Shown here: positions 4,771 through 25,351 of the stretch, in pieces
Layout of the letters: each line of letters opens with the position of its first letter
How positions within the stretch are numbered: position 1 is the stretch's first letter
Assembly (NCBI GenBank): GCA_002269645.1
Contig: NIVC01000754.1
Coordinates: forward strand, 385,520 to 449,519
DNA from: Macrostomum lignano
Taxonomy: Eukaryota
Reading direction: 5' to 3'
DNA: 64,000 bases
Position numbers and translations under genes: made by a program
The notes under the pieces: model-generated
Database searches by the model: none
What the model was told of the DNA's origin: nothing
What the model saw: the letters and a program-made list of their open reading frames with translations, nothing else

Positions 4771-6548
4771 CTACTTCCTCGCTGCGTTCATCGCTCGTGC
4801 ACGTCGCAGATGCATCTCCTCGTCGGGAGCCACCAGACTGTGCCAGCAGCACTTCGACACCGCCTGCTGCTGCTGCTGCGCCTTTGACTCGGTGATGCTC
4901 AGCCAGTGTTCCCGAGCTAGTCGGAAGCGCCGATCGCTCTCGCCACTCGCTCCGTCATCATCGGCTGAAAGCTCAACCGAGCCGACCGCTTGCTTACTGC
5001 GCAGGAAGTCGCTGACGTGCACCAGGCTGAGCCGGAGGGCGCAGTGCCGAAGTCGATCAGCTGGCATGGCTGGGAAGCTGAACTCCTCGTTAAAGTAGGG
5101 GTTGCGGCTCTTATCCACAGTGTCGCTCCGTTTGACGTGGATCGGTCCGTTCGGCTCCATCAGCATCAGCTCAACGTAGGTGTTGGGCAGGTTGTGCTTG
5201 TCCAACTGTCCGTCGGACTGTTTCAGGTGAACACCTGTAGGTTTATTCAGCAATTTAATAAACTTTCTGCTGCATAGAATGACTCAGGCTACTTAATTAG
5301 GTCACATTGCCTAAACAGGGTAAAAGCTACATTCTGCAAAGCTCCTATCGCAGCTATAGGGGATTAGGGTCGCAATTTAGTCTAGAAAATGGGAGTTTAG
5401 AGTGTTCAGGCTCGAGTTGTCTCTGGCTTAAAGTTTCTACTCCATATACTTTCTGGGCCAGTGCCAAAGTTCTTCACACCTTTGCACTCGATAACTCGTA
5501 CCATCAGCGGCGCTTCATCAGCGCCGCCCCGACGCAGCAGCACGCAGATTTCGCCTGGGCCGCAGTCTGCCGCCAAGCCGCGCTTCAGCCTGCGGCGGAA
5601 CACGTGCTTCTCATCCGTCGCAGTGTTGAGCAGCAGGTCGTCGATCTCATTTCCGTAGCGCCGATCCTCCAGATTGTGCCGGCACCGGGCCAGGAGCGCC
5701 GGCTCCTTGGACACTTCGTCGCGGTCGTAAACTTCGAACTTCACCGCGGCCTTGGTGAGGTCGGCCTTGGCCAGCTTGAAGCTGCAGGGATAGTTGAACT
5801 CCGGACTGGTTGTGCCTCGCTCCACAGGCGTGGCGATTGCCTCCGTCTCGCTCAGGGCAGCGCCGGCCCCGTCCTTGCTCACAATCCGGACCAGAATATA
5901 AGGGTTGAGCGTGCCCGATATGTTTCTAGGCAGATCTGTGCAGCCTTTCACAAGCACGGTGAGTTCTTCAGTATCCTGGTTGTAGGTCATCAGGTACCGG
6001 ATGACACCGTAGGGCGAGGGGCAGTCAGCGATGGCGGCCTCCTGGCAGAGTGAGCCGCCGTCGGACGAGCCGTCTCCCAAATCGGCCTTGCCACCGGATG
6101 AAAATCCTTTCCGACATGGGCAGTCGACGCTGTTGCACAGCGGCGTGCAGACGATGCACAGAAGCACCAGGACGACAAGCGACACGCATCCGGCGGAGAT
6201 GCTGGCGATGAAGAATGGCTTGGAAATCCACCAGTACTTCGGTTTCGATGTAGTCTTGCCCCGTGATTTCGTTTCAATTGGCGACGCACTGCCGATGGCT
6301 GATTCCGTAGATCCGTTGATGCGGCTTGTCGACGATGATTTCAAAGCACTGGTAACGATGCTCTTCAGCTGGAGCAGTTGCTCTCGCTGCTTCCCGGTGG
6401 CATGGTGCTTGACGGGAGTCGGGACAGGAGTTGAGTACTCCAGCTCACATGTCACCGGTTGCGCGATATGAACGATGAAGAAAATCAAAAGAAATAGTTT
6501 AAATCTGCTGAAAACTCTAACAGAGTTTGTCAAAGGTGGCTTCACCAT
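4771..6548 (-). CDS. Synaptotagmin-like protein (~520 aa): hydrophobic N-terminus, TM helix with Cys cluster, two C2 domains
   Basis: Exons 6548-5450 (GAA A|GTATAT) and 5234-4771 (CTACAG|GT) are phase-1 compatible. C2A: GVIRYLMTY..LNPYILVRI..TTSPEFN..VKFEVYDRD. C2B: NTYVELML..KSRNPYFNEEFSF..GSVEL..REHW..WHSL. Confidence 0.8.
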
Positions 6549-7932
6549 CTTCTAATCCGAGTCTTGACAGCAGAATCTCTTTCACTGCTTTGAGAGTTTA
6601 CGCTTTTATGACAAAGATTTCTTTACCTTGACCCATTCAATATCAGCTAAAATTGGACTGCCTAAAGGTAGATGCTTGAATGAAGCGAAGAATCTAAATA
6701 ATATAGACTTTATTGTGCTCTGGCCCAGATGCAGAAAGTTGTTGCAGTATAAATCTCAAAATTCTTCTCTTATTGTCCAGTCCACCTAATTTGCCTATCT
6801 TGAGTGTCTCAGACCTCGACTGGGCCTGGCTGGCAGCGCAGCGACAAAAGAAGCACGTTAAAGCAGAGCAATGTGCAGAGCTGCTCAACTTTTCCGGCCC
6901 ACTCCCCCTTATTTACATTTACGCCCCACTGCGCCTGCATACCTGCAATTGTTGCTAGTTTGAAGCAACCTCGTTAATCTAAGCATGCTGCTTGTTGTTT
7001 CGCCGACAACTTAAAAAACGAATATTTTACTACTAGTAGCGTATATAAAATACATTTTCATTGTCTTTTGGGATCGTGGGAAAGAATCACTGTAGAACGA
7101 TGGTTTCGCAGGGAAGTGACTTCGAATGAATTCAATATTGCTGAGTATTTGGCTGCCTATCCTTAACTCTTCTTAACTGTCGTGCGATTTACACCCATAA
7201 AGACACCCTACAGCCCTCCTCGAACATGATTACTAGCCTAAAGCTTCTGTCCTTACGTTTGTGGAGTCGTGGATTCGTGTGGATTCTTGTGGAGAACGTG
7301 TGAATTCTACCTCCGTCAGTCAGGACAGCCTACCTGATCTCTGAAAGAATCTGCGGCGTTGCTTGCAGGGTTGCCCTTCACTCTATGAGAGCGGTCCTGC
7401 AGTCTGAGGCGCTACCAAACCACCAGAGGTTGGTGGTCCAGACCGTCTTGTTTTGCAACAACGATGAGATTTTGGGGCCGACGGACGTCGATCTTTGGGC
7501 ATAGAAGTCACGGCAAGTCACACCGGGCTGGTCCATCTAATCGACCTTTTCAAGCTATATCAACTGCTTCTAGTCCTCCTAAAGTCTAAAATTTGAACTT
7601 CAATTCAAACATAGATTCTATTTCTGTAGAATTAAATTGTCTGCATCAGAAAATCAATTCCAATCCAGTCCTATCCAAGAATTAACCACATAAAGAGACA
7701 ATCCGGTGTGGAGCATGTACATGTAGATAAACACAGACTTCTTCAACACGACTACACTACTGCAGTTAAGTAGCAACATGAGATTGTTTATGACTGCGTG
7801 TTTCTCATACTAGACATATACAATAGAGTCTATAAAAGCTTGAGCAGTCAAAAGCCTCCGCTCTCAGCTCAACACCAGGCAATAGCAGTTCAATTTTTCC
7901 TCTCGAAAAAATCCGCTTGTTTCCAAACGATA

Positions 7933-10900
7933 ATGGGCTCTGGTAGCTCAGTAAATTCCCAGGTAAGAAGCTTATGAAGCACGTCTAAGTACCATTCTTT
8001 TACAATAGTCAAGATGTATTAAAGGTATAATGCTATTTGAGGATCGTTATTACAGGCATATTGCCGTTTGAGGATCGTTAGTACAGGCACAATCCCGCTT
8101 GAGGATCGTTAGTACAGGCACAATCCCGCTTGAGGATCGTTAGTACAGGTACAATGCCGCTTGATAATCGTTAGCACAGGTACAATGCCGCTTGAGGATC
8201 GTTAGTACAGGTACAATGCCGCTTGAGGATCGTTAGCACAGGTAAAATGCCGCTTGAGGATCGTTAGCACAGGTACAATGCCGCTTGAGGATCGTTAGCA
8301 CAGTTACAATGCCGCTTGAGGATCGTTAGTACAGGTACAATGCCGCTTGAGGATCGTTAGAACAGGTACAATGCCGCTTGAGGATCGTTAGTACAGGTAC
8401 AATGACGCTTGAGGGTCGACTGACGAAGCTCTTTTTAGAACGTATCATTCTTTCGCTTTGAATCTTAAACTTTATTCTTAGGCAAAATCTGACACGGTTG
8501 ATGAGTCAGCAGCCTTGCAGCGACTCGCTAAGCTTGTCATTCAAGGCGACTTTGGACAAGTGCGACAGCTGGCGATGCGCCGGTTAGTAAAGTCAAAAGA
8601 TGGAAGTGGACGCACCGTTTTGATGCTAGTGGCTGACACTCGTGGAACTCCTTTGCAAGCTGAAAAGTGCATCTTGTACTTGTTTGAGCTCGGCGCGGAT
8701 CCTAAAGCATCTGACGCAGAGGGCAACACGGCTGCTCACCTGGCAGCCCGCCGGGACCACGTGCGAGTGCTGGCGCTGCTGCCTTTCGAGGCGAAGTGGC
8801 TGCAGAACGAGCGGGGACGCACTCCGCTGATGGAGGCGGTGCTTTTTGGCAGCTGGAAATGCGCCAAGCACCTGCTGCACCTGCTGAGGCAGGAGAGGTT
8901 CATAGACGAGTACAGAGGCGTCAGTACAGCACGACAACTAGGCAGGTTTCTAAAGGCCAGCTACACTGGCGATATGAGTCGAAACCCGATGAGGCAGAAG
9001 TTTTTTGGAATGAAGGACCAAAATGGTCAGACGGCGCTGGAGCTGGCGAAATTCAAGGGCTACTCAGAGCTGGCCAGCTATATAGAACGGTGAGTGAGTC
9101 TGGTGTGTAATCTGCCCTGCTTTACTTTCTGGCTTTACAGAATATCATTCTCAAGAATAGCTGGTTTTGTCAATACGAGCGTATAACACGAGATTTTTTG
9201 GATTTTTTCTGCAGCGAGATGCGTCTGGATGTGGTCGCGATTGGGTTAATCAACGGTCTGACGAAGCAGGTAAGCCTCGTTCGCTGGTGCGTGTCTCTTA
9301 TTTACCATGTGGCAATGCATCTACTACTTAAGGGATCGGCAAACTTTTTTACCTCAAGGAAGGGCCAGATAAAGAACCTAGCTGCGGTCTAGATGAGAGA
9401 GGAAATGAGATAATAGATGAGGGAGAAGATGGGGAGAGAGGAGAAAAGAGAGTTGAGAAGAAACCTCCTGATCTACTTAACGTCGATTTCCTGTTAACTA
9501 ATCGCTGCAGGAAGAGGCCGACAGAGAGAAGCTGGAGTGCCTGGCCCGGGAGGGCAACGTGGCGACGCTGCTGCGGCTGGTGACGCGCGCCAACTGCGAT
9601 CTGCCTAGCAGAGCCGGTCACACCATGCTGATGCATCTAGTTCGGAGTGTCGAAATTGAAAACGCGTCCGTTTGGAAGCAGCTGCTGAACCTGGCTGACC
9701 CAACCTGCGCCGATATAAATGCCAACACCTGTGTGCATCACGCAGCCGAGGCAGGAAACGACTCGGCGATTGTCGCACTGCTAAATGCAGGAGCCGCCGC
9801 CAATGCCACAAAGGACAACGGCGAGACTCCCCTGATCGCGGCAGCCTCCAACACGCCCATTCGAAGAGCCTTCTTGACAGGGTGGTTCCTGTTGGCTGGA
9901 GGCGCCGATTGGAGTCTGAAAGACTCCCGTGGCTGCACTGCCTATGAAATTGCCCTCGAATATGATAAGGAGGATCTGACCGACTTACTGCAACCGTGAG
10001 TTTACATTTACCGCTCTTTATGGGCAAGTAATTTGCTCTGAAGGTGTTTCTACGAGCGTAAGTTGCCCTTGACTTCACTTGCTGATCGAAGTGACACGGG
10101 AAGATATTAATATAACAATCAAGTTCAATATAGCTCGCATGACCTGCAACATCGAAAAGTCGCCATCACAGAAGATTCCGTCTGTGATCGCTACTTTCGA
10201 AAGCGCTGGTAAAGTCTCAATCTTTGCGAGTGACGCAACTCAGCTACGCCACGGCAGACTTGAGTTGAGGAATGAAGTGGGGGGAAGCGGTGTGCGAGGG
10301 TTGGACGGATTAAAGCTACCCGAGTGGCGACGTTGCTATGTTGCTGAGTATATTTTAGGACTTTCGGATGTTTTAGTACATTTCCCATCGAAAAAAGGTT
10401 ATCAAAGAGTTGATTTTGTACTTGGCTCATATTGTCCAACTGCAAAACTGCTTGACAAATCTAACGTGCATCAGTAACAATTACCTTTTCGCTTGCCTGT
10501 TTCAGGTACCAATCGAAAAAATTCTTTGACGAGACTCCGAATCTGCCGTAAGTGTTGATTGAGATTTGTCTTGTACTTATAGCTCGTACTAGTAATTTTA
10601 AGTATAGGCGGATTGTTTAGAACAATGCTCTCATCCTTGTAGATGGAAAACGCGGCGAGGAGCTCAGACAGACGACATCTGGGACGAAGATGAGAGCTGG
10701 CAAGTCATACTACTGCAGATTGAGAGTTGGACCAGTGAAGGACACTCTGGTTTTATAGATTTATGCGACCTATTTCTAGATTCAGAAAGCTAAAAATTGA
10801 TAAAAAGCAACAGGTTAACGAGTATAGTTAGTACTTGAATTTAATCTGATTTAATCAATTTCAGGTCGCCTGAAAGAGCGGAATTTCCGGAAGTTCAGCC

Positions 10901-12467
10901 GTCAACAGGCTCTCAAAGCGGTGCTACGACCAGACAGACGAACTGGTAAGCCACGAGGTCTCGCTTGCTTGCTTAAATGTACTATTGGATTTTTTATTTG
11001 AGACATCGTCGAGACTATAAATAAGGTCTAAGTTAGGCTTAGTGTTCTTTTATTGGCTTAAAAAGACTGAATCTGAGGAAGTCCATAGACCCGAGGAAGG
11101 CCAATGATCTAATGAAGTCCATAGATCTGAGCTATGGAAGCCCATAGACCTGAGAGGAAGCCCATAGATCTGAGGAAGCCCATAGACCTGAGAGGAAGCC
11201 CATAGACTATAAACTTTTAAATCTGTGAAAGCAGCTTTTCTCGTGAATAAATTATATGAACCCACGAAATTATTTTACCTTTTTATAAAAACTATTAGGT
11301 ATATAAATAATAAAATATAGAAAAATATATAAGGTTGGAGAGAATTTCTCGGGTTTGGTAATATATAATTCAGTTTCAATCGCTATGCCCAATTCCAGGA
11401 GCGAAGAGGAGTTCTACCCAGTTACGAACCGCAGGGATTCTGCATCATCATCAACATTGGCAAATACGAAGAGTTAAAGCACAAGGAGGGAGGCACAGCC
11501 ATCATCGATCCAGAGATACGTGAAGGATCGGCGAAGGATGTGCAGCTAGTGAGACAAGTATTCGAGGAGCTTCGTTTCATTGTCAAAGTTCGGGAAGACC
11601 TCAAAACTCAGGAGATCGACGACTATCTCAATGACGTAAAGAGATCAGAGGAGCTCAACAAGCACGGCAGTTTTGTCTGCTTTTTAATGGCTCACGGCAG
11701 CCACGACTGCATCTACGGAGCCGATTGGGTTCCTTATCCCATCGATAGGATCGTTGATAAATTTCAGGTAATTTAAAAATGCAGATTTTTATTGACAAAA
11801 ACTACGGTAATTAGTCTACCAGTCTTATTGTCGTCAATGGTAATTATTTGTATTGTACTTTTCTGAGTATCTGGGTGGTCTTAAGCGGGTTGAGGGACGC
11901 TACACAATCGCAAAAAATGTGTAATTTGTTACTCTAGGGAAAAATCTGCAAACTAATTTTCACGAATTCGCTGTTTCAGTCCTACTTCTGCCAGGCTCTG
12001 TCCAGGAAACCGAAAATCTTCTTCATTCAAGCCTGTCGCACCAACACTTTAGCCGCTGCACGCTCCACCATTCGCTCCGACCGAGTCCCAGCCATGGGAC
12101 AAGGCCAGACTCGCTCCACTCAAGAAGCTGGAGAGTCCAGCGTGACCTTCGATGCAGCCGCACTTGCTCCCCTGAGAAACCGAGACTTATGTCCGGCCGA
12201 AGGCGACTTTCTGCGCTGTTTCGCCAGCACACCGGGCTCCGTCGCCATAAGAGACACCCACAGGGGCTCGCCATTTGTGCAGATTCTTTGCCGCTTCATG
12301 CAGCAGCACTACAAGGTGCACGACGTGTCGCACATCATGACAAAGTAAACAACTTTCTGCAGAAGAATTCTGTTGAGACCGGCGATGGCAAGTTGCAGTC
12401 TATTGTGACGCAGAAGGTGGACCAGCTGGCACGCCGGGTCAGCTTTGATCCCAGCAGGGCCAGCTAG
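7933..12467 (+). CDS. Ankyrin-repeat-caspase fusion (~738 aa after correcting two 1-nt frameshifts), N-terminal MGSGSS myristoylation motif
   Basis: Exons 7933-7962, 8482-9089, 9215-9269, 9511-9995, 10506-10547, 10643-10699 (GC donor), 10865-10945, 11399-11767, 11980-12467, all phase compatible. About 8 ANK repeats (GRTVLM, GNTAAHLAA, GRTPLMEA, GQTALELA, GHTMLM, NTCVHHAA, GETPLIAA, GCTAYEIA). Caspase motifs GFCIIINI, REGSAKD, FLMAHG, KPKIFFIQACRT, DFLRCFASTPGSVAIR, GSPFVQ. Frameshifts at ~11430 and ~12345. Confidence 0.8.
8037..8415. repeat. 31-bp minisatellite GCCGCTTGAGGATCGTTAGTACAGGTACAAT (~12 copies), intron 1 of the ANK-caspase
   Basis: 31-bp period seen directly (8101, 8132). Confidence 0.95.
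11070..11210. repeat. Short intronic tandem repeat (GAGGAAGCCCATAGACCT-like)
   Basis: About 7 degenerate 18-20-bp copies. Confidence 0.75.
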
Positions 12468-13639
12468 GCCTCTCAAAGCCGGGTGACGTCTCAGTGAAGA
12501 TTTTTTCTGAAGGAACTTGTTGTCAAATTGTTGTTAAAATGTACTCTTTATTCAGAATTTGACAGACCGTGATGATACGAAGTACGTTTTTCACCGGTCT
12601 CCTGCCCTTTAGGCCTATTTAATCTCGTCTTTTACGTCGTACTTTTTCGGTAGATTGATTTAAACAGTGTTTATTTGTTAAATTTTTTGTTTGTATTCTT
12701 GAAATCTCAAAAACTGATTGCTGTTTTTTCGTTCTTGTTTTAGATGTGAAATCGAGCATCTTAAGATTCTGTGAACTGTGCTTTTGTGCTTAAAAGAATA
12801 TTTATTTGTAACTACGCAATAATATATCTGCTTATTTCAAAATATTTATCAATTTTGCCCCCACCCTTGTGTTGTCGCTAAGGAAAAAATTGTGTCGCTA
12901 AAAGTGCATAAAAATGACGATGCTGTAAATATTTGAAACCGTTTTTTATTTATCCTAAATCCTTAGATATAGATTAATGCCTTAATTCATAGTCTTTCGT
13001 GTAGTAGCAAGCCGTGTGTGCGATGAAATGCAAGCTGCTAGACAATGAATGGAGCGGCTTCTCCCTCAGATCTGATGTGCCGAAAAGGTGCTTGGCATAT
13101 TTTTACAACCCTGGGTCGCGCCTGGCCCAACCAACAAAAGGCTTGCACAACAATGGGCATAGAGTGAGTTCAATAGCGGCTTTAACTGCAAGCGGTTACC
13201 ATAGTAACTGTACAGGAAATTGTCCAGGCCTCTCGGGCGCTGCTATGCTGATGTTCAATATTAAATTATAACAGTACTGTACAGTTTAACTGCCACACAC
13301 TTCCGTCTCCTCTCCCTGTACTGTACACACCGCTTTATCGATCGTCCCAAACCCCTTCTTGACTCCTAATTCCAGCCACCCCTGTCCCTTTATCTCTAAA
13401 TAGGATGTCATTGGTTACGCTCAGGACAGGCTTCTTGCTCCAATACCTGGCTGCTCCTGCATTCTCGTTAATTTCACCCAGTAACAATAACAATAAAAAA
13501 TAGTTCTGCCCGCGACTCTATAGACCATAGCGCTCACGTGATTTAAATTTTTTTTGTGCTTTAAAAGTACGTATAGAGTGAAACCATCTGCAACTATTAC
13601 TGTTGTTAGTAGGCATTTGTGATTCGTTAGTGGCTTTAG

Positions 13640-13760
13640 CACAAGGGGGCTTTAGCATTAATGGCTTTAGCACTAGGAGCTTTAGCACCAAGGGGCTTTA
13701 GCACCAGGGGTTTAGCACCAGGGGTTTAGCACCAGGGGGCTTTAGCACCAGGGCTCCAGC
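13640..13760. repeat. GGGCTTTAGCACCA-like 14-16-bp tandem repeat
   Basis: About 8 copies visible. Confidence 0.85.
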
Positions 13761-14059
13761 TCAGTTCTAAGATAATCGATTGTTATCGTCACTTCATTTC
13801 AGAATTTCGAACCACTTGAGGTACTAAATTCACTAATAAATCGAAATTCTGGTCACTAAATATATCAAGCAGTTGGTCGGACCCGCAAAACTCATCCTTA
13901 CTATACACCAGAATTTAGAAATACCCGAATAGAGATTCCCTTTTCCATTTAAAGAAGTATTGTAGTATGAATGGAAAATAATAGCAATTCCTTAATATTT
14001 CAGCCAATTACTTTCTCACTGAAATTGACGGACAATAATAGAACGAAGACCTCAAAAGA

Positions 14060-14262
14060 GGAGACAGGAGAGCAGATGAGATGAGAGAGGAGAGGAGAGG
14101 AGATGAAAGGAAAGGAGAGCAGAGGAGGGGGGAGAGGAGAAGAGGAGAGGACAGGAGAGGTGAGAAGATGAGAGGAGAGCAGAGGAGAGGAGAGAGGAGG
14201 AGAGGAGAGAAGAGAGGAGAGAAGGAAAGGAGAGGAGAGAAGGGAAGAGGGAAGAGGAGATT
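14060..14262. repeat. GA-rich low-complexity tract (GAGAG/GAGGA)
   Basis: Directly visible. Confidence 0.9.
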
Positions 14263-14266
14263 CGAC

Positions 14267-14450
14267 TAGGGAGCTGCAAAGAGACACAAACCTCGTGCGG
14301 GCCGGATTGCAATGCTAATGCGAAGTTTTAAAGGACCAGAGAGCCAGACAAGGACTACTTAACAACAACAATGTTAAGTAGTACTTGGAGCCGGATAGAT
14401 AGCCTTCGCGGGCCGCATGTGGGCCGCGGGCCAATGTTTGCTGTCCCCTA
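14267..14450. mobile_element. Possible hAT (Charlie-like) MITE remnant
   Basis: Right end GCCGGATAGATAGCCTTCGCGGGCCGCATGTGGGCCGCGGGCCAATGTTTGCTGTCCCCTA resembles Charlie-type termini. Left TAGGGAGCTGCAAA matches its reverse complement at 11/14 positions. No 8-bp TSD seen. Confidence 0.45.
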
Positions 14451-14628
14451 CCTTAAAAGACAAATAAAAGTGCATTGATGACGCATTGCAAAATTGTACA
14501 GTATTATTCTCTATCTCCTACTTACGTCAGTAGCAAAAAGCTATTGCACGGAAAAAGAAATGACAAGTAATGTACGAGTACTTCTAGAATAGAGTAAGAG
14601 ATGGTAGGATAAAGTAACCCCCATTCTC

Positions 14629-16395
14629 ATGGCAACCTGCACAAGCCTACAAAAGCAGTCACTGGGGCAGGTGCGCTAGTGGAGCGGATTCTGCTTTTTG
14701 TGCAAGCCAGCTCAGCTAAGAGATTTGACAAGTCCAATGTCTTCTAAAAGAGCCACTGGTGTTGCAAGTCTCAATTTGGAAGTGAAAGAAATGTCTTCTA
14801 AAAGAGCCACTGGTGTTGCAAGTCACAATTTGGAAGTGGAAGCAAAGCTTAGCGGCACTACACGGTCCACTAGCCAATCTTCTAGTAATTATTCGACCCG
14901 AAGAACAAGAACACAGGTTGACGATGTGGATGAGCTATCAAATTACGAGAAACAGGAAAATTAGTATGTTTTTTACACAAATTTTGAAGAAGTCTCGTAT
15001 TTTTCGTCTTTAAAAAGTTAATAAAATTTGGCCAATATTGTTTGAGCAGCCGGAGTACGTCGTACGCAAAACCTCGGGAGACGGACATTAACAATCCTGG
15101 GAGTTACGAGAGTCCAGACCTGTATCCACAAGGTGCCACCGGAGTCTCTCGAAAAAGTGGAGGACCGTCAATATGGTAATCTCAGAAGCTTCTCTCTGAA
15201 ACTCTCTGAGTGTTCACTGAATGATTTCTTTCGTACTCGTATTTTAGGCTAGACGAGGACTACTACAAAGTGACCAATCCTCAAGGATTCTGCATCATTG
15301 TCAACATCAACAAGTACACGGCTACTAGCGATATCACAGTCAGCCACGAGGAGCGCGAAGGTTTCCAGCGGGATGTAGATCGAGTGACCGAACTCTTTGG
15401 GAAGCTCCAATTCCGCGTCAAAAAGCAGGAGGACCTCACTGCCGAGGAGATCGACGACTTTCTCAGCGAGGTGAAGCGATCGAAAGAGCTGGCCAGACAC
15501 GGCAGCTTTGTTTGCTTTTTTATGGCTCACGGCAGCCACGACTGCATATACGGCAGCGACGGCGTCCCGTATGAGATCCGTAAACTTACCGAGAGGTTTC
15601 AGGTTAGCATTGAACATTCTGTCTGAACTCCTTGTTATTAGCAATTGGAAGAATGATCTTGCCCGACATTTGAGCACGCAGCCAAACCCAGAATTCCACA
15701 CAGCTGGTGCACATATGCATCGTCTCTTTCATCGACGGACCTCTCGGCTGATGACGGTACATGTACAGTGTTCTACATACTCTAGCACAATGGTGGCATG
15801 AGTCAAAGAAACTTCCACTTGCTGAGATGCCGTTAAATTTACTTTTGCTCTGGTCTGCTTTTTTAAAAACATATTTTGTTCAAGCAATCTTAGCCTATGC
15901 TCAACCATACCTTCTCAGGCCTCCGTCTGCAAAAGTCTGGCTGGGAAGCCAAAGATTTTCTTCATCCAGGCCTGCCGCGGCAACAGAATCGGTAGTCGGA
16001 GCTCAAGAATGAAAACTGACAAGCTTTCTGCGCCAGCCTGCCGAAATGCTGCATCGGCAGTCGAATACTCCACTATGAGAACTGATGAGCCGCCAGCCCC
16101 AGTGCTCGACCCGGCCATCCACCCCGCTGAAGGAGACTTCCTGCTCTGCTTCGCCAACACCCCGGGCTCAGTGGCGTTCCGAGACACCGCCGAAGGCTCC
16201 GTATTTGTGCAGACTCTGTGCAGTTATATTGAAACAGATTTCAAGCGGCACGATCTCGGCTACATCATGACCAAGGTGAACCGGCACCTGCAGAAGGAGC
16301 CAGTCCAGATCGATAACAAACTGTACCACGTCGTACCGCAGAAGGTTGACCAGCTCGCTTATAAAGTCAGTCTCGATCCCAGGAGGGCTCTTTAG
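14629..16395 (+). CDS. Caspase (peptidase C14A, ~418 aa) with Ser/Thr-rich prodomain; tandem paralog of the upstream caspase
   Basis: Exons 14629-14670 (tentative), 14707-14963, 15050-15175, 15248-15602, 15919-16395, frame intact. Motifs GFCIIVNI, REG..RD, FFMAHG, KPKIFFIQACRG, DFLLCFANTPGSVAFR. Same intron positions as the upstream caspase domain. Confidence 0.88.
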
Positions 16396-16560
16396 AAACT
16401 GAGACTGCAGCTTAAATGATAGCAAAAATTTGACAAAAGCAAAATAAACTTTTTTTGCTTGATCAAAACTTTTTTATCCGTTTGTAACCTTCTGTAACCA
16501 GCATATTGATACATATCTGCGAGTATATTCAATTTATGAACAAGTTAAGTTTAACCCAAG

Positions 16561-16850
16561 GGGGTTGCAGCCTTTGTGGTTAGAGCGTCTGACACACGAC
16601 TGAAAGGTCGGGGGTTCGATTCTCGACCCATTCGCGACAATTTTTGTCCTTGAGCAGGACGCTTAACTCTACATTGCTTCAGTTCACCCAGCTGTAGAAT
16701 GGCTGCCAGCATTAGCTGGGGTAATTGACTGTGGCGACCCCCCCCCCCCCAGTGCTTGGACTGAACAGCCGTACGCAGCCTTCAGATGCACCGCGCAATA
16801 GCTGTCGGTTGCTCATCCGCCCATTTGGGCAAATGTAATTAAATAATGTT
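16561..16850 (+). mobile_element. tRNA-derived SINE with CORE-like central domain
   Basis: A-box TGGTTAGAGCG and B-box GGTTCGATTC. 16644-16702 TGTCCTTGAGCAGGACGCTTAACTCTACATTGCTTCAGTTCACCCAGCTGTAGAATGG resembles the CORE/MIR consensus as I recall it. AT-rich tail. Confidence 0.75.
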
Positions 16851-17017
16851 TTAATTTTAATTTTAACAATTATAATTAAACCTCTTTAGCCTCTATAAAA
16901 CTCGAAAAAATGCCTCGTATTCCCTGGTTTTAAATTTTGCAACGCACCGTACAATGTATACAATATTTTTGCCTCTAATATAAATGTATTATCGATACCA
17001 AATCCGCGAATTTACTG

Positions 17018-17391
17018 ATGGAACGGCAAATTTTGTTTGGGATTTGTTCCCTAATTCTGTTTTCAATCTTATCAAGCGCTGAGGCAAGATCTACCGCTAT
17101 TATACAGCGTTGAGTAAATTAAACCTGACAGAGATGTATTCCTTGATCCCATTCCTTGGCTACAACCCACACCCACACTTAGGGGTTCTCGGGTTCGCTA
17201 ACGCTTTCGAACTCAAATTCCATCCTGCATCAGAAAGCCCTGGTGTGCTCACAATCAGAATCCAATATAGCTCTGACAGCAATATTGATGGAGATGATGG
17301 ATATTGGGATAACAATGGCTCTATTGCCTAGTTAAGAATTTACAACATCAACTGCAGGCTGCCTAACTAAGGCTATCGTATGAGTGCACAC
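17018..17391 (+). pseudogene. Frameshifted candidate secreted protein with a CBM21/CBM25-like YWDNNG motif
   Basis: MERQILFGICSLILFSILSSAEA looks like a signal peptide. Adding one T at ~17110 joins it to ORF 17110-17331 (..IRIQY..GYWDNNG). A KNYNINC-like reading follows only after further frame changes. Confidence 0.3.
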
Positions 17392-17544
17392 CAGCCACTA
17401 GGGTAAACCGAACCATGCTCTGCATTCAAAGTACATTAAATCCAGTTGCGTACACAGCAACTTTAACTGGAGGAGTGGCAACATTAATGGGGGTACCAAT
17501 ATTTGGTTTCTTAGTTCGCGCATCTATCTCGTACTTGTAGTTTG

Positions 17545-18365
17545 GTGCCCCTGTCTCTTGGTGTGGGTGCACTGTCTCTTGGTGTGGGTGCACTGTCTCT
17601 TGGTGGGTGTCCCTGTCTCTTGGTGTGGGTGTCCCTGTCTCTTGGTGTGGGTGCACTGTCTCTTGGTGGGTGTCCCTGTCTCTTGGTGTGGGTGCCCTGT
17701 CTCTTGGTGTGGGTGCACTGTCTCTTGGTGTGGGTGCCCTGTCTCTTGGTGTGGGTGCCCTGTCTCTTGGTGTGGGTGCCCTGTCTCTTGGTGGGTGTCC
17801 CTGTCTCTTAGTGGGTGTCCCTGTCTCTTGGTGAGTGTCCCTGTCTCTTGGTGTGGGTGCCCTGTCTCTTGGTGGGTGCCCCTGTCTCTTGGTGTGGGTG
17901 CCCTGTCTCTTGGTGTGGGTGCCCTGTCTCTTGGTGTGGGTGCACTGTCTCTTGGTGTGGGTGCCCTGTCTCTTGGTGTGGGTGCCCTGTCTCTTGGTGT
18001 GGGTGCACTGTCTCTTGGTGTGGGTGCCCTGTCTCTTGGTGTGGGTGCCCTGTCTCTTGGTGTGGGTGCCCTGTCTCTTGGTGGGTGTCCCTGTCTCTTA
18101 GTGGGTGTCCCTGTCTCTTGGTGAGTGTCCCTGTCTCTTGGTGGGTGTCCCTGTCTCTTGGTGGGTGTCCCTGTCTTCTGGTGTGGGTGCACTGTCTCTT
18201 GGTGGGTGTCCCTGTCTCTTGGTGGGTGCCCCTATCTCTTGGTGGGTGCCCCTATCTCTTGGTGGGTGCCCCTATCTTTTGGTGGGCGCCCCTTTCTTTT
18301 GGTGGGCGCCCCTGTGTTTTGGTGGGTGCCCCTGTCTCTTGGTGGGTGCCCCTATCTCTTGGTGA
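17545..18365. repeat. 19/21-bp minisatellite CCCTGTCTCTTGGTG(TG)GGTG(T)
   Basis: About 40 copies; source of many spurious ORFs. Confidence 0.97.
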
Positions 18366-18734
18366 AGCCACGGCTAATGCGCAAGAAAGTTGATAGGTTT
18401 ACAGTAATTTAACAACCCTTTATGTTCTACTGTCGCTAGTAGCATTGCTTGATTTATAACTCTGTAGTTTTGCAAAAACTATATAGTTAGAAGTTGTTGA
18501 CATGTATTAAAATATCGCTCGCGTTTAAACAAACAATAGAGCTTAAAGCGATGAATACATACTTCAACTGCAGAAAAATTGACTCATTCAAGAAGTTTAC
18601 TAACTGAAAAACTTTACCAAGACGGTTGAAAAAAAATGAACTTCATACAAAAGTGCGTTTTCTTTCAATCAATCATCTACACTGCATTTCGAGCTCCGAT
18701 CCTCCATTTTCTCCATGTTCCTTCCAGACACTCT

Positions 18735-19055
18735 CCCTATCTATCTCCCCCTCCCGCCTCTCTATCTCTTCCTCCCCGCCTCTCTATCTCCCCCTCCCGC
18801 CTCTCTATCTCTTCCTCCCCGCCTCTCTATCTCTCCCTTCCCGCCTCTCTATCTCTCCCTCCCCGCCTCTCTATCTCTCCCTCCCCGCTTCTCTATCTCT
18901 CCCTCCCCGCTTCTCTATCTCTCCCTTCCCGCCTCTCTATCTCTCCCTTCCCGCCTCTCTATCTCTCCCTCCCCGCCTCTCTATCTCTCCCTTCCCGCCT
19001 CTCTATCTCTCCCTCCCCGCCTCTCTATCTCTCCCTTCCCGCCTCTCTATCTCTC
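18735..19055. repeat. 21-bp CT-rich minisatellite CCCGCCTCTCTATCTCTCCCT
   Basis: About 15 copies visible. Confidence 0.95.
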
Positions 19056-19887
19056 CTAGGTCTCTTTAGTTTCGGTTAAGGGTTAATATTTAGAAGTTTT
19101 TAAAAGATACGCTCGTAGTATTATAACAATGTAAAATTTCGAGTTTATTAAAAATCGCTCCCTACTTGTGGATAGAGAAATTTTATTTGACTGCTTTTGT
19201 TTTGATTTTTTCAATTCAACATTTTTTAAGTTAGGTTAAGCAGTAACGTCAGTAATCCAAAATAATATCTTAAACGAGCAAAATCGTGTTTGTCCGAGAA
19301 TGCGGGTTTTCTTGAGAATTTACACACTTCGGGGGGCCGTCATATGGGGGCGCGGGTCTGAATGTACAGTCTATATCGTCTCTATAACCCCTCCCCACTG
19401 GGTCGGGTCCGTTAGCCCGCCTCCCCCTGGCACAGCGTACACTCGCGCACAAGCTGTCTCAGTGTACATTGGAGAGAAGAAAGAGAGAGAGAGAGTTTTT
19501 ATTACTGAACTTCCAAACCCAGAGGGCTGGGTGACCCCCTTTTCCAACTATTTATTAGTCGTTTTCAAGCGCAGCGTTCCTCCAGGCAATTACTATTTAG
19601 TTCCCACTTCCCGATATTAAGCCCCTGCAGCTCACGCAGGTAAATGACGCTTAGATTACGAAGATAAGAAAGGAGACAAAGTCAAAGAAGAGCAGAAGAT
19701 CACAGCGCGCAGAGCAGGAGACGCAACAGCTGTTCTGTTGCCTTTGCCTTGCTGCGTAAGCTTTTGTGGTTAAAATGATTTGCAATGCGAGTATTGCAGC
19801 TATTGCTTGTTCTGACTGCGGCTCAACACGCATAGTTCTGTCATTTTACAATCAGAAATCGTTCATCCAGCCCATAGCAGCAAAGTT

Positions 19888-22800
19888 ATGAGCAGTGCAA
19901 CTATTAAAAGTCAACAATCTGCATTGGAGCAGTCGCTTCCATCGATTGAACTGCTAGCATATGCTGCATGGTTTGTCATCGTGCTGGCTAGCGTGGGCCA
20001 TGCTTTCAAGACTCAGATTATTCCTGAGAGCCGTGAGTAGCTATTTCTATTTTAGCTCTGAAGCCTGTTGATTCATGCTCCGTTCTCAGATCCTCAGTTG
20101 CTGGGTCAGCCTCCCAGATCCTCAGTTGCTTGGCCAGCCTCCCAGATCCTCAGTTGCTGGGCCAGCCTCCCAGAGTGTCAGTTGCTGGGCCAGCCTCCCA
20201 GAGTGTCAGTTGCTGGGCCAGCCTCCCAGATCCTCAGTTGCTGGGCCAGCCTCCCAGAGTGTCAGTTGCTGGGCCAGCCTCCCAGAGTGTCAGTTGCTGG
20301 GCCAGCCTCCCAGATCCTCAGTTGCTGGGCCAGCCTCCCAGATCCCCAGTTGCTGGGCCAGCCTCCCAGATCCTCAGTTGCTGGGCCAGCCTCCCAGGTC
20401 CCCAGTTGCTGGGCCAGCCTCCCAGATCCCCAGTTGCTGGGCCAGCCTCCCAGATCCCCAGTTGCTGGGCAGCTGGGCCAGCCTCCCAGATCCTCAGTAG
20501 CTGGGCCAGCCTCTCCCAGATCCCCAGTTGCTGGGCCAGCCTCCCAGATCCTCAGTTGCTGGGCCAGCCTCCCAGATCCCCAGTTGCTGGGCCAGCCTCC
20601 CAGATCCTCAGTTGCTGGGCCAGCCTCCCAGAGTGTCAGTTGCTGGGCCAGCCTCCCAGAGTGTCAGTTGCTGGGCCAGCCTCCCAGAGTGTCAGTTGCT
20701 GGGCCAGCCTCCCAGATCCTCAGTTGCTGGGCCAGCCTCCCAGAGTGTCAGTTGCTAGGCCAGCCTCCCAGAGTGTCAGTTGCTGGGCCAGCCTCCCAGA
20801 TCCTCAGTTGCTGGGCCAGCCTCCCAGATCCCCAGTTGCTGGGCCAGCCTCCCAGATCCTCAGTTGCTGGGCCAGCCTCCCAGGTCCCCAGTTGCTGGGC
20901 CAGCCTCCCAGATCCCCAGTTGCTGGGCCAGCCTCCCAGATCCCCAGTTGCTGGGCAGCTGGGCCAGCCTCCCAGATCCTCAGTAGCTGGGCCAGCCTCT
21001 CCCAGATCCCCAGTTGCTGGGCCAGCCTCCCAGATCCTCAGTTGCTGGGCCAGCCTTCCAGATCCTCAGTTGCTGGGCCAGCCTTCCAGATTCTCAGTTG
21101 CTGGGCCAGCCTCCCAGATCCCCAGTTGCTGGGCGAGCCTCCCAGAGTGTCAGTTGCTGGGCCAGCCTCCCGGATCCTCAGTTGCTGGGCCAGCCTCCCA
21201 GATCCCCAGTTGCTGGGCCAGCCTCCCAGATCCCCAGTTACTGCGCTGCCAGCCTCCCAGATCCCCAGTTGCTGCGCTGCCAGCCTCCCAGATCCCCAGT
21301 TACTGCGCTGCCAGCCTCCCAGATCCTCAGTTGCTGGGCCAGCCTCCCAGAACCCCAGTTGCTGGGCCAGCCTCCCAGATCCCCAGTTGCTGGGCCAGCC
21401 TCCCAGATCCCCAGTTGCTGGGCTACAGCACTCAAGATCACTGCAAGACCCGGAGACCGCATCACCTTCCAGTTCTTCGCCTGGACGCGGCAAGTCTGAC
21501 GGACGGTATGTTCGGATACAAAATGGTATGAAAACAAATTCGTCATAATTTGTTCTCAAGACTTTGTTTTTTTTAAGCCCGACTTCAATCGATTAAATCG
21601 CGCGCAATTATTGCAGGACAACACCTTTATTGACTGGAATCTCTACCTGAGTATGTTTGCTCCCATGCTGGCCTTGCTGGCCTTGCACCTGCTAATTAGC
21701 AGATTAGCGATGCGCTTCTGCAACGCCCAGGTACGAAAAAGGGTCAAAAAAGGTCATTCCAGTCGAAAGAAAAACACAATTTAGGTTTATTTTACTGAAA
21801 TACTGTGATATTTCGGGTTTATGATATTTCGGGTTTATGATATTTCGGGTTTGTGTGATATTTCGGGTTTATGATATTTCGGGTTTATGATATTTCGGGT
21901 TTGTGTGATATTTCGGGTTTATGATATTTCGGGTTTATGGTATTTCGGGTTTGTGTGATATTTCGGGTTTATGATATTTCGGGTTTATGATATTTCGGGT
22001 TTATGATATTTCGGGTTTATGATATTTCGGGTTTATGATATTTCGGGTTTGTGTGATATTTCGGGTTTATGATATTTCGGGTTTATGATATTTCGGGTTT
22101 GTGTGATATTTCGGGTTTATGATATTTCGGGTTTATGATATTTCGGGTTTATGATATTTCGGGTTTGTGTGATATTTCGGGTTTATGATATTTCGGGTTT
22201 ATGATATTTCGGGTTTGTGTGATATTTCGGGTTTATGATATTTCGGTTTATGATATTTCGGGTTTGTGTGATATTTCAGGTTTATGATATTTCGGGTTTA
22301 TGATATTTCAGGTTTTTTTGATATTTCGGGTTTGTGATATTTCAGGTTTGTGATATTTCGGGTTTGTGATATTTCAGGTTTGTGATATTTCGGGTTTGTG
22401 ATTTTTCGGATGTGTGATACTTAGGGTTTGTGATATTTCGGGTTTGTGATCTTTCGGGTTTTTGATTTTTCAGATGTGTGATATTTCGGGTTTTTGTTAT
22501 ATTTCGGGTTTGTGATCTTTCAGGTTTGTGTGATATTTCGGGTTAGTGAAATTTCGGGTTTGTGATTTTTCAGATGTGTGATATTTCGGGTTTGTGTGAT
22601 ATTTCGGGTTTGCGATATTTCGGGTTTGTGTGAAATTTCGGGTTTGTGATATTTCGGGTTTGTGTGATATTTCGGGTTTGTGATATTTCGGGACTCGGGT
22701 TTATGATGATATTTCGGGTTTGTGTGATATTTCGTGTTTGTGTGATATTTCGGGTTTGTGATATTTCGGGTTTGTGTGATATTTCGGGTTTGTGATATTT

Positions 22801-25351
22801 CGGGTTTGTGTGATATTTCGAGTTTGTGATATTTCGGGTTTGTGTGATATTTCGGTTGTGTGATATTTCGGGTTTGTGTGATATTTCGAGTTTGTGATGT
22901 TTCGGGTTTGTGTGATGTTTCGGGTTTGTGTGATATTTCGGATTTGTGATATTTCGGGTTTGTGATATTTCGGGTTTGTGATAAATCGGGTTTGTGATGT
23001 TTCGGGTTTGTGAGATATTTTAGGTTTGTGATGTTTCGGGTTTGTGTGATATTTCGGGTTTGTGATTTTTCGGGTTTGTGATATTTCGGGTTTGTGTGAT
23101 ATTTCGGGTTTGTGATGGCGACCCGTATTCACTGCACATTCAATTTCTCCACTACTTTTGTTTCGCTCAGGTGCACAGCTTACTGTCGGCAATTTTCACC
23201 TTATTTGTCAGCTGTCAGGTGCTGTCAGCTCGCTGTACACTGCTGTATCTCTGCCTGCACCTCATCTGTATTACGACAGCCTCTCTGCTCGGCCACCTGG
23301 CTGTTTGGCTGTCCATCGGCCTGGCGTTCTGGCAGTTCAGCGGTGCCGCATTTGGCGACAACCATCAGCTGAGATCGGCACTCCAGCTGGACTCAAGAGG
23401 CGCTCACCTGTACTACCCCGTCACTGGCTACCTGTACTGCAGGTTCCTGTCAATGGGACTGTGCCTGGCTGCTAGTCCCGCTTTCCTGTCTGACAGCAAC
23501 CCTGTCAGACGGATAGTCAGATACTTACCGGTGTCTCTGCACTATGCATTCTATCTGCCCAACTTCCTCGGCGCCCCAGTGGTCACTATGGATGAGTTTC
23601 TGCGGCAGAAACAGGCCCCGAACCCCGCCGCTGTTCCAGTCCGCCAGATTTTATCTCGGCTGTTGCGCCTGTGCTTCTGGTTGGCATTTACCGTGTTCGT
23701 GCTGCACTGCTTCCATGCTGGAGCCTACCTGGAGACTCTGGGGATTAGACAGGTGAACTGGTGGTGTATTTTGCAGATCTGGTGCATCTCCATTGATTCC
23801 CAATTTATCATGTTCTTGTTTTCCCGGGGAATTCCACAAGAATCCCGATCTTAGATCCCCACAAGAATCCCGATCTTAGATCCCCACAAGAATCCCGATC
23901 TTAGATCCCTAGAAGAATCCCGATCTTAGATCCCTAGAAGCCATCCCGATCTTAGATCCCCACAAGATCCCGATCTTGGATCCCCACAAGATCCCGATCT
24001 TAGATCCCCAGGAAAGTCCCGATCTCAGATCCCCACAAGAATCCCGATCTCAGATCCCTATGAGAATCCTCGAAATCGAATCGCAAAGCTTTAAATTGCT
24101 AATCTTCTATGTTCTCCCCCTACAGATCCGGCACCGCGGGCCCATAGACCCGGCGCACCTGGGCTTTGCACTGTACACCCGTGGCCAGCTGTTCCACCTG
24201 GAATACCTGCAGTACTACGGCTGGCCGGCGTTGTTCGCCAGCCTGGAGGGAGTCCAGCTGCCACACTGGCCCGCCTGCATCTGTGGCGTGGTCTCCTACA
24301 GGGAGATGTGGCGCCTCTTCGACCGCGGCTTGTTCGCTATCGTCCGCGACCACGTGTACATCCCGCTGGGGGCAGCCGGCTCAGTCTGGGCCGCCAGCTG
24401 CTCGCCACCGCAGCCTCCTTCGGCTTCATCTGCGTTTATCATGGCAACTATGACTCAGTGCAGGTCTGGATACTGCTCAATCTGGGGCTCGTCTGCGCTG
24501 AACTGCTGGCTGTCCGACTCTACAGAACTGCGCTCAGGGAATCTTTGGTGAGAGCCACCATCAGCCTCCCAGATCCTCAGTTGCTGGGCCAGCCTCCCAG
24601 ATCCCCAGTTGCTGAGCCAGTCTCCCAGATCCCCAGTTGCTGAGCCAGTCTCCCAGATCCTCAGTTGCTGGGTCAGCCTCCCAGATCCTCAGTTGCTGAG
24701 CCAGTCTCCCAGAGTGTCAGTTGCTGGGCCAGCCTCCCAGATCCTCAATTGCTGGGCCAGCCTCCCAGATCCTCCGTTGCTGGGCCAGCCTCCCAGAGTG
24801 TCAGTTGCTGGGATTAATCAAATATTGCCGTCACCCTCATCCCGCTCTTCAGCTCCAATGGCTCAGCCCGGCGTGTCTCCGCCGTCTGGTGGCGGCTTTC
24901 GCGGCGGCAAACCTCATTCCGCCTTCGATGGGGATTTTCTTTTTATTCTACGGCACCCCAATTGGGTGGCTGGTGATGAGGGAGATGCTGTGGCTGCCGC
25001 TGACAGGACAAGGTGAGTCCGGTTTGAGTCAGGCGGATAAGTAGTCGATTTGTCGGGTCGAAATGCGACTCAAACAACTGGGGTCAATTCGGGTCAAGCT
25101 ACAAATACATATGTACTTTGATATGTTTGGGACTGATTTAGATCGGGTCAAAGTACTGCAATAAAGGTCAAGTCAGTCAGTCCGGGTGAATTATCATTTG
25201 AGATTACTAACCCAGAGCATTCTGCATTGAAATCAACAAACTTTCAGGCTCCATCAAGGGATTCCTGGTGCTTTATTCCGGCTTCTACTGCACTGTTCAG
25301 CTGGCTTTTGAGTACAAACGGAGGCGAAGCCAAGCTTTGAACAAAGACTAG
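19888..25351 (+). CDS. HHAT: Hedgehog acyltransferase-like MBOAT protein; one 1-nt frameshift at ~24386
   Basis: Exons 19888-20032, ~21430-21490 (boundaries uncertain), 21617-21730, 23171-23752, 24126-24547, 24853-25012, 25248-25351. Motifs LPSIELLAY, YAFYLPNFLGAPVVTMDEF, P.CI...SYREMWRLFDRGL, HVYIPLG, catalytic FICVYHG. Confidence 0.85.
20085..21422 (+). repeat. 28-bp minisatellite CCAGCCTCCCAGATCCTCAGTTGCTGGG (family A), HHAT intron 1
   Basis: About 47 copies with variants; the same unit recurs at three other loci in the window. Confidence 0.97.
21805..23115. repeat. GATATTTCGGGTTT(AT/GT/GTGT) 16-18-bp minisatellite, HHAT intron
   Basis: About 75 copies visible. Confidence 0.97.
23830..24060. 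repeat. 25-bp minisatellite AAGAATCCCGATCTTAGATCCCCAC, HHAT intron
   Basis: About 9 copies visible. Confidence 0.9.
24565..24812 (+). repeat. Family A 28-bp minisatellite, second array in HHAT
   Basis: Same unit as 20085-21422, about 9 copies. Confidence 0.95.

Follow-up and report, generated by a model that had tools for sequence, protein, structure and literature searches.

Caspases with an N-terminal ankyrin-repeat (ANK) prodomain form a flatworm clade that is sister to the caspases with a death effector domain (DED) prodomain and that was described as restricted to parasitic species and proposed as an innovation of these parasites (Horkan et al. 2024, Genome Biol Evol, PMC11463336). According to that study, ANK caspases were first noted in Schistosoma, and the only caspase listed for Macrostomum lignano has a kinase prodomain and is sister to the ANK clade (PMC11463336). 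Here, we analyzed a 64-kb stretch of the M. lignano genome (henceforth referred to as the window) that encodes two caspases in tandem: copy 1, which has an ANK prodomain, and copy 2, which has none in the window. We know of no activator or function for the ANK-prodomain caspases of flatworms. Flatworm ANK caspases are already described, and the locus adds a further member to the family. Our best explanation, to which we assign a probability of roughly 70%, is that the two genes are old tandem paralogs of an ANK-caspase expansion specific to M. lignano and that copy 2 was truncated by a deletion.

The window covers the terminal 64 kb of contig NIVC01000754.1 (449,519 bp) of the M. lignano assembly Mlig_3_7 (GCA_002269645.1), and its first 21,477 bases are identical to the contig sequence (locus L004; 100%, no gaps). 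This assembly was generated with Canu from PacBio reads plus Illumina and 454 data of the DV1 line, and its gene annotation was guided by RNA-seq (PMC5730564). Its authors report that duplicated blocks at ≥ 95% identity total 180 Mb (PMC5730564). Copy 1 corresponds to the annotated gene Mlig009377, whose locus is present in four versions within Mlig_3_7: g1 on contig NIVC01004683.1 (L001), g2 in the window itself (L004, NIVC01000754.1), g3 on NIVC01000875.1 (L005) and g4 on NIVC01000894.1 (L006). M. lignano is a neopolyploid. We built the gene models of both copies by hand, using three-frame translations and splice sites. Pfam comparisons placed two caspase units (Peptidase_C14) in tandem on the + strand, and we detected no third caspase anywhere in the 64-kb window.

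We placed both copies in a neighbor-joining tree of caspase domains (247 columns, 200 bootstraps). The M. lignano ANK-caspases were monophyletic with 100% bootstrap support and included both copies, whose caspase domains are 52% identical. Copy 2 grouped with the proteins P0002 and P0069–P0071 at 84%, and that group joined copy 1 at 90%. ANK repeats are present in the full-length members of this group, P0002 (encoded on another contig) and P0070; the models of P0069 and P0071 are incomplete at the N-terminus. Copy 2 also shares the motif TD-E-x-x-AP-V-x-x-x-A-I-x-P-AEGDFLLC with P0069–P0071. Executioner-like caspases (the caspase-3/7-like proteins of snail, clam, frog and crab) formed a separate clade (98%) that excluded both copies. 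A first reading of this DNA, made from the sequence alone and henceforth called the sequence-only reading, had taken the two genes for local duplicates and proposed a caspase tree as a check. Both copies do fall into one M. lignano-specific clade as paralogs. In this tree, however, they are not each other's closest relatives, and copy 2 groups first with ANK-caspases on other contigs.

At least eight ANK-caspase gene groups of M. lignano were found in public databases (Mlig009377, Mlig016858, Mlig007583, Mlig006631, Mlig020959, Mlig000705/Mlig009621, Mlig001045 and A0A1I8F2E4), and one further ANK-caspase among the distant matches, P0357, again came from M. lignano. This does not fit the restriction to parasites reported in PMC11463336. 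Neither the word-indexed protein searches nor the exhaustive profile search returned a neodermatan (parasitic flatworm) sequence among their matches. In the exhaustive profile search, the best long-prodomain matches outside Macrostomum were DED caspases, which fits the DED affinity described in PMC11463336. Against solved structures, the family profile scored 156 bits for caspase-3, 152 bits for caspase-7 and 152 bits for caspase-8, values that do not separate initiators from executioners. We also observed an M. lignano caspase with a Ras/Roc GTPase domain in the prodomain (P0234 and P0368; Mlig000293g2 and Mlig021837g1), the caspase domain of which is close to the ANK-caspase family (249 bits against the family profile).

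The origin of copy 2 became apparent from the comparison of the window with the g1 version. The L001 locus is colinear with the window except for ~2.45 kb of extra sequence (L001 8594-11046) that is missing at window position 14736. The left edge of this segment is a (CTGA)142 array (L001 9168 being its last position and 8601 its first). It is followed by fragments of a first ANK block in two different frames (L001 9444-9667), a piece resembling exon 3 of copy 1 (REMRLQISKESKISGLT, L001 10031-10111) and a second ANK block that is ~40% identical to that of copy 1 (L001 10202-10594). The segment also holds the 5′ half of a linker exon. Exon 1 of copy 2 in the window corresponds to sequence that, in L001, makes up the 3′ portion of this internal phase 2-2 linker exon, which has its own acceptor (..aatttcag|A). 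The flanks of the deletion in L001 are GGTCCATGG on the left and GCCCAATGAG on the right, and the comparison therefore places the ATG of copy 2 at window position 14737 at the deletion junction. The deletion is common to the window, L005 and L006. Thus, the description of copy 2 as free of ANK repeats holds for these three versions and fails at L001, where decayed ANK exons from before the deletion survive upstream of the caspase; copy 2 lacks ANK repeats only through the deletion. Given the tree and the motif shared with P0069–P0071, the pair derives from an old tandem duplication of a complete ANK-caspase gene, and other family members were later dispersed or duplicated elsewhere.

In the window, copy 2 has four exons and encodes an intact 394-aa protein with an unbroken p20 and p10 frame. 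It matches Peptidase_C14 (E = 1.4e-43, 149.7 bits against a cut-off of 21.4) and no other Pfam domain. The ~118 aa before the caspase exon contain no Pfam domain and constitute a short prodomain, a state that is secondary. Exon 1 (14737..14963, + strand as are all exons given here) encodes two MSSKRATGVAS.. units and then ..VDDVD..QEN (VDDVD at 14917-14931), and ends in phase 2. The two units form a tandem duplication of 54 bp (18 aa) on the + strand at 14736..14842 (2.0 copies, 96% identity), which lies at the junction of the 2.45-kb deletion and has an ATG in each unit. L001 has ~1 such unit, the window and L005 have 2 each, and L006 has 3. Exon 2 (15050..15175) is a 126-nt phase 2-2 linker exon that ends in TG|, and L006 has an in-frame 57-nt deletion within it. 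Exon 3 (15248..15602) encodes the p20 part, with MAHGSHD at 15522-15542. Exon 4 (15919..16395) carries QACRG at 15967-15981, MKTD|K at 16009-16023, MRTD|E at 16075-16089 and the stop codon at 16393-16395. The TG|G junction in phase 2 lies at 15175|15248, and a phase-0 junction follows ..FQ at 15602|15919.

Two further features flank copy 2. Upstream is a GA-rich (AGGAG)n tract (window 14066-14260) that in L001 is expanded to 43.7 copies of a 15-mer (7468-8112). Just downstream, at 16560-16640, is a tRNA-like stretch (..GGTTAGAGCGTCTGAC..GGTCGGGGGTTCGATTCTCGACCC..) that may be a tRNA-derived short interspersed nuclear element; ARAGORN called no tRNA in 12000-20000, a region that includes this stretch.

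Copy 1 has nine exons. Its caspase matches Peptidase_C14 (E = 1.5e-40, 139.8 bits against the Pfam gathering score of 21.4), and the ankyrin repeats that define platyhelminth ANK caspases are found N-terminal to it (matches to Ank_2, Ank_4 and Ank_5). Exon 1 (7933..7962) encodes MGSGSSVNSQ, with a start that agrees with proteins P0001 and P0108. The first ANK block is encoded by exon 2 (8482..9089, phase 2 end, ..YIER) and the second by exon 4 (9511..9995, phase 2 end, ..DLLQP). The two blocks are connected by exon 3 (9215..9269, EMRLDVVAIGLINGLTKQ), which agrees with P0001. Three symmetric phase 2-2 exons encode an acidic disordered linker of ~60 aa: exon 5 (10506..10547, 42 nt, YQSKKFFDETPNLP), which is common to ANK-kinase genes, exon 6 (10643..10699, 57 nt), with DDIWDEDE at 10671-10694, and exon 7 (10865..10945, 81 nt), which ends in TG|. 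The p20 part is in exon 8 (11399..11767), with the His motif MAHGSHD at 11687-11707. Exon 9 (11980..12467) carries QACRT at 12028-12042, VTFD|A at 12142-12156 and a frame-shifted C-terminal tail that runs to a TAG at 12465-12467. The TG|G phase-2 junction is at 10945|11399 and the phase-0 junction after ..FQ at 11767|11980. The tandem arrangement had been reported in the sequence-only reading, as had both types of junction, which are present in both copies. The 18-aa duplication and the VDDVD, DDIWDEDE and VTFD/A motifs were likewise read correctly from the sequence.

The intron after exon 6 is of the GC-AG type (donor CTG|gcaagt at 10699-10705). Exon 6 is included in the transcript-based P0001 and P0108 and skipped in P0111 and P0112, the ab initio models of the ML2 assembly; skipping is possible because this 57-nt phase 2-2 exon is symmetric. 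The intact 760-aa proteins P0001 (g1) and P0108 (g3) of the RNA-seq-guided annotation confirm the copy 1 exons, including the GC-AG intron, and copy 1 is a real, transcript-supported and uncharacterised gene. In the AlphaFold2 model of P0001, both ANK blocks are confident, with a predicted local distance difference test (pLDDT) score of 75-93. Residues 424-485, which form the prodomain linker, are disordered (pLDDT < 30), as is the intersubunit loop at 616-675, and the caspase core is of moderate confidence, with only 7 sequences in the alignment. A start of the form MGSxxS is common to copy 1 (MGSGSS, window 7933-7950) and its paralogs P0004 (MGSAAS) and P0005 (MGSWFS); it resembles an N-myristoylation signal and suggests membrane anchoring of these ANK-caspases. 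A 31-bp unit is tandemly repeated within intron 1 of copy 1 (window 8023-8418, 12.8 copies, 92% identity).

We examined the catalytic residues and the candidate processing sites. The His and Cys motifs are present in both copies (MAHGSHD in both, QACRT in copy 1 and QACRG in copy 2), as are the residues of the pocket for a P1 Asp (IREGS, QAC and AIRD in copy 1; EREGF, QAC and AFRD in copy 2). The pocket Arg-Gln-Arg (R42, Q141, R215) is invariant in the family alignment, and Asp specificity is predicted for both. All the catalytically intact family members that we compared have an Asp 13-19 residues ahead of the ..(G/S)DF motif, a position that corresponds to the intersubunit cleavage site of classical caspases. 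The motif reads VTFD in copy 1, MRTD in copy 2, EQTD in P0069–P0071, EETD in P0075, ETID in P0006 and LAVD in P0073. A second invariant Asp lies 6-14 residues after QACRx (IRSD|R in copy 1 and MKTD|K in copy 2). The sequence-only reading had proposed Asp-rich sites for self- or cross-processing. VTFD|A aligns with the Asp of all the intact members and is a reasonable candidate processing site. No such support was obtained for VDDVD and DDIWDEDE, which are in disordered linkers that vary by indels. In P0002/P0072 (Mlig016858; L002 ~15559-15700) we observed QAGRG instead of QACRG and EESR in place of the conserved intersubunit Asp; Mlig016858 may be a catalytically dead pseudo-caspase, judging from these substitutions.

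The intron phases had been used as evidence for local duplication and for shuffling of the caspase module onto different N-termini. In copy 1, each of exons 4 (the last ANK exon), 5, 6 and 7 has a phase-2 end, and the start of the caspase exon is likewise in phase 2. At L002 and L003, two paralogous ANK-caspase loci, the caspase exon is preceded by a phase-2 acceptor as well, and intron positions are shared family-wide. The phase-2 junction is therefore a family trait and does not demonstrate local duplication; only the Trp codon at the junction is particular to copies 1 and 2. The shuffling proposal fared better in part. Many protein kinases of M. lignano have an N-terminus with 44-54% identity to the ANK region (~400 aa). 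The kinase gene P0008 (BOX15_Mlig034440g1; L007, NIVC01000875.1:145770-165443) has the same intron positions and phases as copy 1, including a 42-nt phase 2-2 exon (G TAC..CTG CC), and the acceptor of its kinase exon is also in phase 2. The same phase-bounded module is thus found with different partner domains, as expected of an exon-shuffled module. The symmetric phase-2 exons and the shared module support exon shuffling at phase-2 introns, with the ANK module as the constant unit and the catalytic domain as the part that changes. Transfer of a caspase cassette to another N-terminus is not what explains copy 2, which lost its ANK module by deletion. We also observed that the ANK module heads the kinases P0007–P0030, some of which are tandemly duplicated and one of which is on the contig of g3, ~240 kb away, and that in P0031 it is combined with an SH3 domain.

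Copy 1 is out of frame on the window contig, which the sequence-only reading overlooked. One base is missing near 11428 in exon 8, where the window has GAACCGC and the sister contigs have GAATCCGC or GAACCCGC. From TG|G, copy 1 reads WSEEEFYPVTN and loses the caspase frame after 29 nt. The NCBI protein of the window locus (PAA77287.1/P0110, BOX15_Mlig009377g2, 500 aa) is truncated there and ends in the frameshifted ..FYPVTNRRDSASSSTLANTKS. A second missing base near 12341 in exon 9 results in a TAA stop at 12345-12347 after ..HIMTK and places the last 41 codons in another frame. Both missing bases are present in all three sister contigs, where the frame of caspase exons 8 and 9 is intact, and the window is identical to L005 over these two exons except for the two bases. 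Over 11285-20271, 2 substitutions and 16 single-base indels separate the window from L005, along with a further single base that the window lacks at 20181. Relative to L001, the window shows 14 one-base deletions, one 2-base deletion and just one insertion, of 5 bases, over 10.2-13.5 kb. Indels that are not accompanied by substitutions are characteristic of errors in a long-read consensus. Because the frame breaks are private to the window contig and accompanied by scattered 1-base indels, we read both as very probable consensus errors of the PacBio-based assembly, and assembly error probably accounts for the truncation of the annotated 500-aa Mlig009377g2 product.

Elsewhere, too, the sister contigs depart from the window by clusters of 1-base indels, frequently at short runs of C or G, with substitutions rare or absent (6295-7619 compared with L001 1-1330, and 18753-22344 compared with L005). 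Consensus errors of the indel type seem common in Mlig_3_7, and other frameshifted genes there deserve equal caution. A repeat with a period of ~28-30 bp forms long arrays at window 20260-21440, with multiple BLAST matches to the end of L001, and occurs on the − strand at 24560-24710, 34240-34530 and 51400-51550.

We weighed our explanation of the locus against several others, and the first two concern whether each copy is a working gene. Were both frameshifts real, copy 1 would be a young pseudogene in this version and copy 2 the sole working caspase of the locus. The bases are indeed missing in the deposited contig, from which NCBI translated the truncated P0110, and the loss of redundant copies is plausible in a neopolyploid, with the L006 version of copy 1 carrying a nonsense codon. 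The near identity of the window to L005 over both exons, the dominance of scattered single-base indels over 9 kb and the bias of the window toward deletions relative to L001 nevertheless make real frameshifts quite unlikely in our view. Conversely, copy 2 could be a decaying, functionless remnant of a duplicated ANK-caspase whose open frame reflects the recency of the loss. Its ANK part is decayed or deleted, its 5′ exon is unstable (a variable-number repeat, indels and a start codon at the deletion junction), and the RNA-seq-guided annotation (method: PMC5730564) calls no gene for it at any of the four loci. On the other side, the caspase exons are intact at all four loci despite introns that differ by 3-4%, all the catalytic motifs are retained and the linker-exon indels (54, 57 and 6 nt) are in frame. 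The exons are also conserved relative to the introns, by a factor of 4-5: compared with L006, copy 2 has 9 substitutions in 1128 aligned exon nucleotides and 54 in 1658 non-exon nucleotides (p = 7e-6), and compared with L001 the caspase exons 3 and 4 have 6 in 832 nt and intron 3 has 11 in 316 nt (p = 0.0014). The ratio of nonsynonymous to synonymous substitution rates (dN/dS) is below 1, at 0.17-0.57. We therefore consider a functionless copy 2 unlikely. The full 394-aa open reading frame from the junction ATG is present at the three deletion-bearing loci only; in L001 that ATG is out of frame.

Several observations weigh against our explanation. The key node of the tree stands at 84%. The dN/dS values derive from tiny counts, with 6-8 substitutions per comparison. 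The region directly upstream of copy 2 is likewise conserved relative to L006 (0.7%), so the conservation of the exons could partly reflect recent gene conversion rather than selection. Besides the absence of a called gene for copy 2, the word-indexed protein search returned no stand-alone copy 2 protein, the best match being 59% identical. At L006, copy 1 has a nonsense substitution, K200*, in the first ANK block (exon 2, L006 ~9264-9871) that looks real. The annotated g4 protein therefore starts at the next Met (MRLDVV..) and has 524 aa, and some versions of copy 1 may be decaying.

The remaining alternatives concern the relationship between the two copies. The sequence-only reading had raised the possibility of an initiator/effector module. 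In such a two-tier module, an ANK-bearing initiator (copy 1) would cleave an ANK-less effector (copy 2) at Asp sites and the tandem linkage would provide co-regulation. Copy 2 has the short-prodomain architecture of an effector and its exons are constrained, neither copy has lost the catalytic dyad or the Asp-binding pocket, and an Asp occupies the intersubunit-equivalent position in all intact members (VTFD, MRTD, EQTD, ETID, LAVD) and is lost in P0002. However, an Asp in the intersubunit linker is general to caspases and is no evidence of cross-processing, and the short N-terminus of copy 2 results from the deletion and varies between versions. Copy 2 is nested in the initiator-like ANK clade, outside the executioner clade. 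L002 and L003 encode one caspase each, with no tandem partner within 10 kb, and such pairing therefore does not recur as a module. An evolved two-tier module is disfavored by the phylogeny, by the lack of an annotated copy 2 transcript and by the absence of pairs at these paralogous loci, and we consider it very unlikely. Alternatively, the two copies could be a single transcription unit with alternative 3′ caspase cassettes, in which in-frame splicing would connect the ANK exons of copy 1 with copy 2's caspase exons. The phases would allow this, as phase 2 is found at the ends of copy 1 exons 4-7 and at the starts of copy 2 exons 2 and 3, and multi-gene precursor mRNAs account for ~7% of the transcripts in M. 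lignano (PMC5730564). The UniProt model A0A1I8IPY8 of the ML2 assembly (P0112, 1126 aa) even joins copy 1, a remnant of the second ANK block and the caspase of copy 2. This is, however, a computational model that runs through copy 1's own caspase domain, and the RNA-seq-guided annotation ends Mlig009377 at the copy 1 stop codon at all intact loci; we consider a single unit extremely improbable. There is, finally, a slim chance of a more consequential history, in which the 2.45-kb deletion turned an initiator into an executioner-like caspase in one step and in which homeologous or allelic copies still preserve the pre-deletion state. In that case, selection would maintain copy 2, acting downstream of the neighboring ANK-caspase or as its dimer partner, and the ANK module would mark a signalling system of this lineage with interchangeable effectors. 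If true, an ANK-module system in a free-living flatworm would contradict an origin of ANK caspases with parasitism.

Under our preferred explanation, two old paralogs of which one was truncated, copy 2 would have started as a complete ANK-caspase whose ANK exons decayed. The deletion then removed the ANK remnants, so that upstream sequence now abuts the interior of a linker exon, and left an ATG in frame and thereby a 394-aa caspase with a short, disordered, repeat-bearing N-terminus. The anatomy of the locus, the deletion, the phylogeny and the conservation of the copy 2 exons are shown by the sequences; the activities of both proteins, and any coupling between them, we infer. Copy 1 is probably initiator-like: through its ANK module it would be brought to a partner, possibly at a membrane, and there undergo proximity-induced activation and cleavage at VTFD|A, the linker Asp conserved in the family. 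Recruitment via ANK repeats is not available to copy 2, which, if expressed, would serve as a substrate of ANK-caspases or a dimer partner for them.

The locus matters in several respects. If orthology holds, the multi-gene ANK-caspase family of M. lignano would put the origin of ANK caspases before parasitism. M. lignano, a free-living and early-branching flatworm that is transgenic-ready and amenable to RNA interference, would be a tractable system in which to find the binding partner of the ANK module. The locus offers a natural comparison between versions of the same caspase with and without a remnant of the recruitment domain, and it documents a phase-2-bounded N-terminal module that is common to caspases and kinases. 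For the annotation, the 394-aa downstream caspase is missing from Mlig_3_7 and the ML2 model A0A1I8IPY8 is a fusion of two genes.

Compared with known systems, copy 1 is most like the platyhelminth ANK caspases, in which an N-terminal ankyrin prodomain precedes a p20/p10 caspase and the catalytic domain is nearest to DED-type initiators. It differs from those described in PMC11463336 in that the M. lignano ANK region is a split module of two blocks and a connector exon that is also found on ANK-kinases. Such kinases (P0008) share the N-terminal ANK module and the positions and phases of the introns, whereas their C-terminal domain is a protein kinase and not a caspase. The DED initiators caspase-8 and caspase-10 are the nearest catalytic relatives outside the species and have a long recruitment prodomain, a flexible linker and an intersubunit Asp, but their prodomain is a DED and not ANK, and we know of no FADD-like adaptor for ANK caspases. 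Copy 2 resembles the executioners caspase-3 and caspase-7 in its short domain-free prodomain, its QACRG and its Asp ~14 residues before the p10 ..GDF.. motif. Unlike them, it is placed outside the executioner clade and owes its short N-terminus to a recent deletion in an ANK-caspase. The human CFLAR-CASP10-CASP8 genes form a tandem cluster in which cFLIP keeps the recruitment domains and has lost catalysis. Like that cluster, the flatworm pair arose by local tandem duplication of an initiator-type caspase, followed by divergence of a single functional part. Mutual regulation by heterodimerisation in the style of the CFLAR cluster could be conceived for the pair by analogy, although copy 2, unlike CFLAR, lost the recruitment domain and keeps the catalytic residues.

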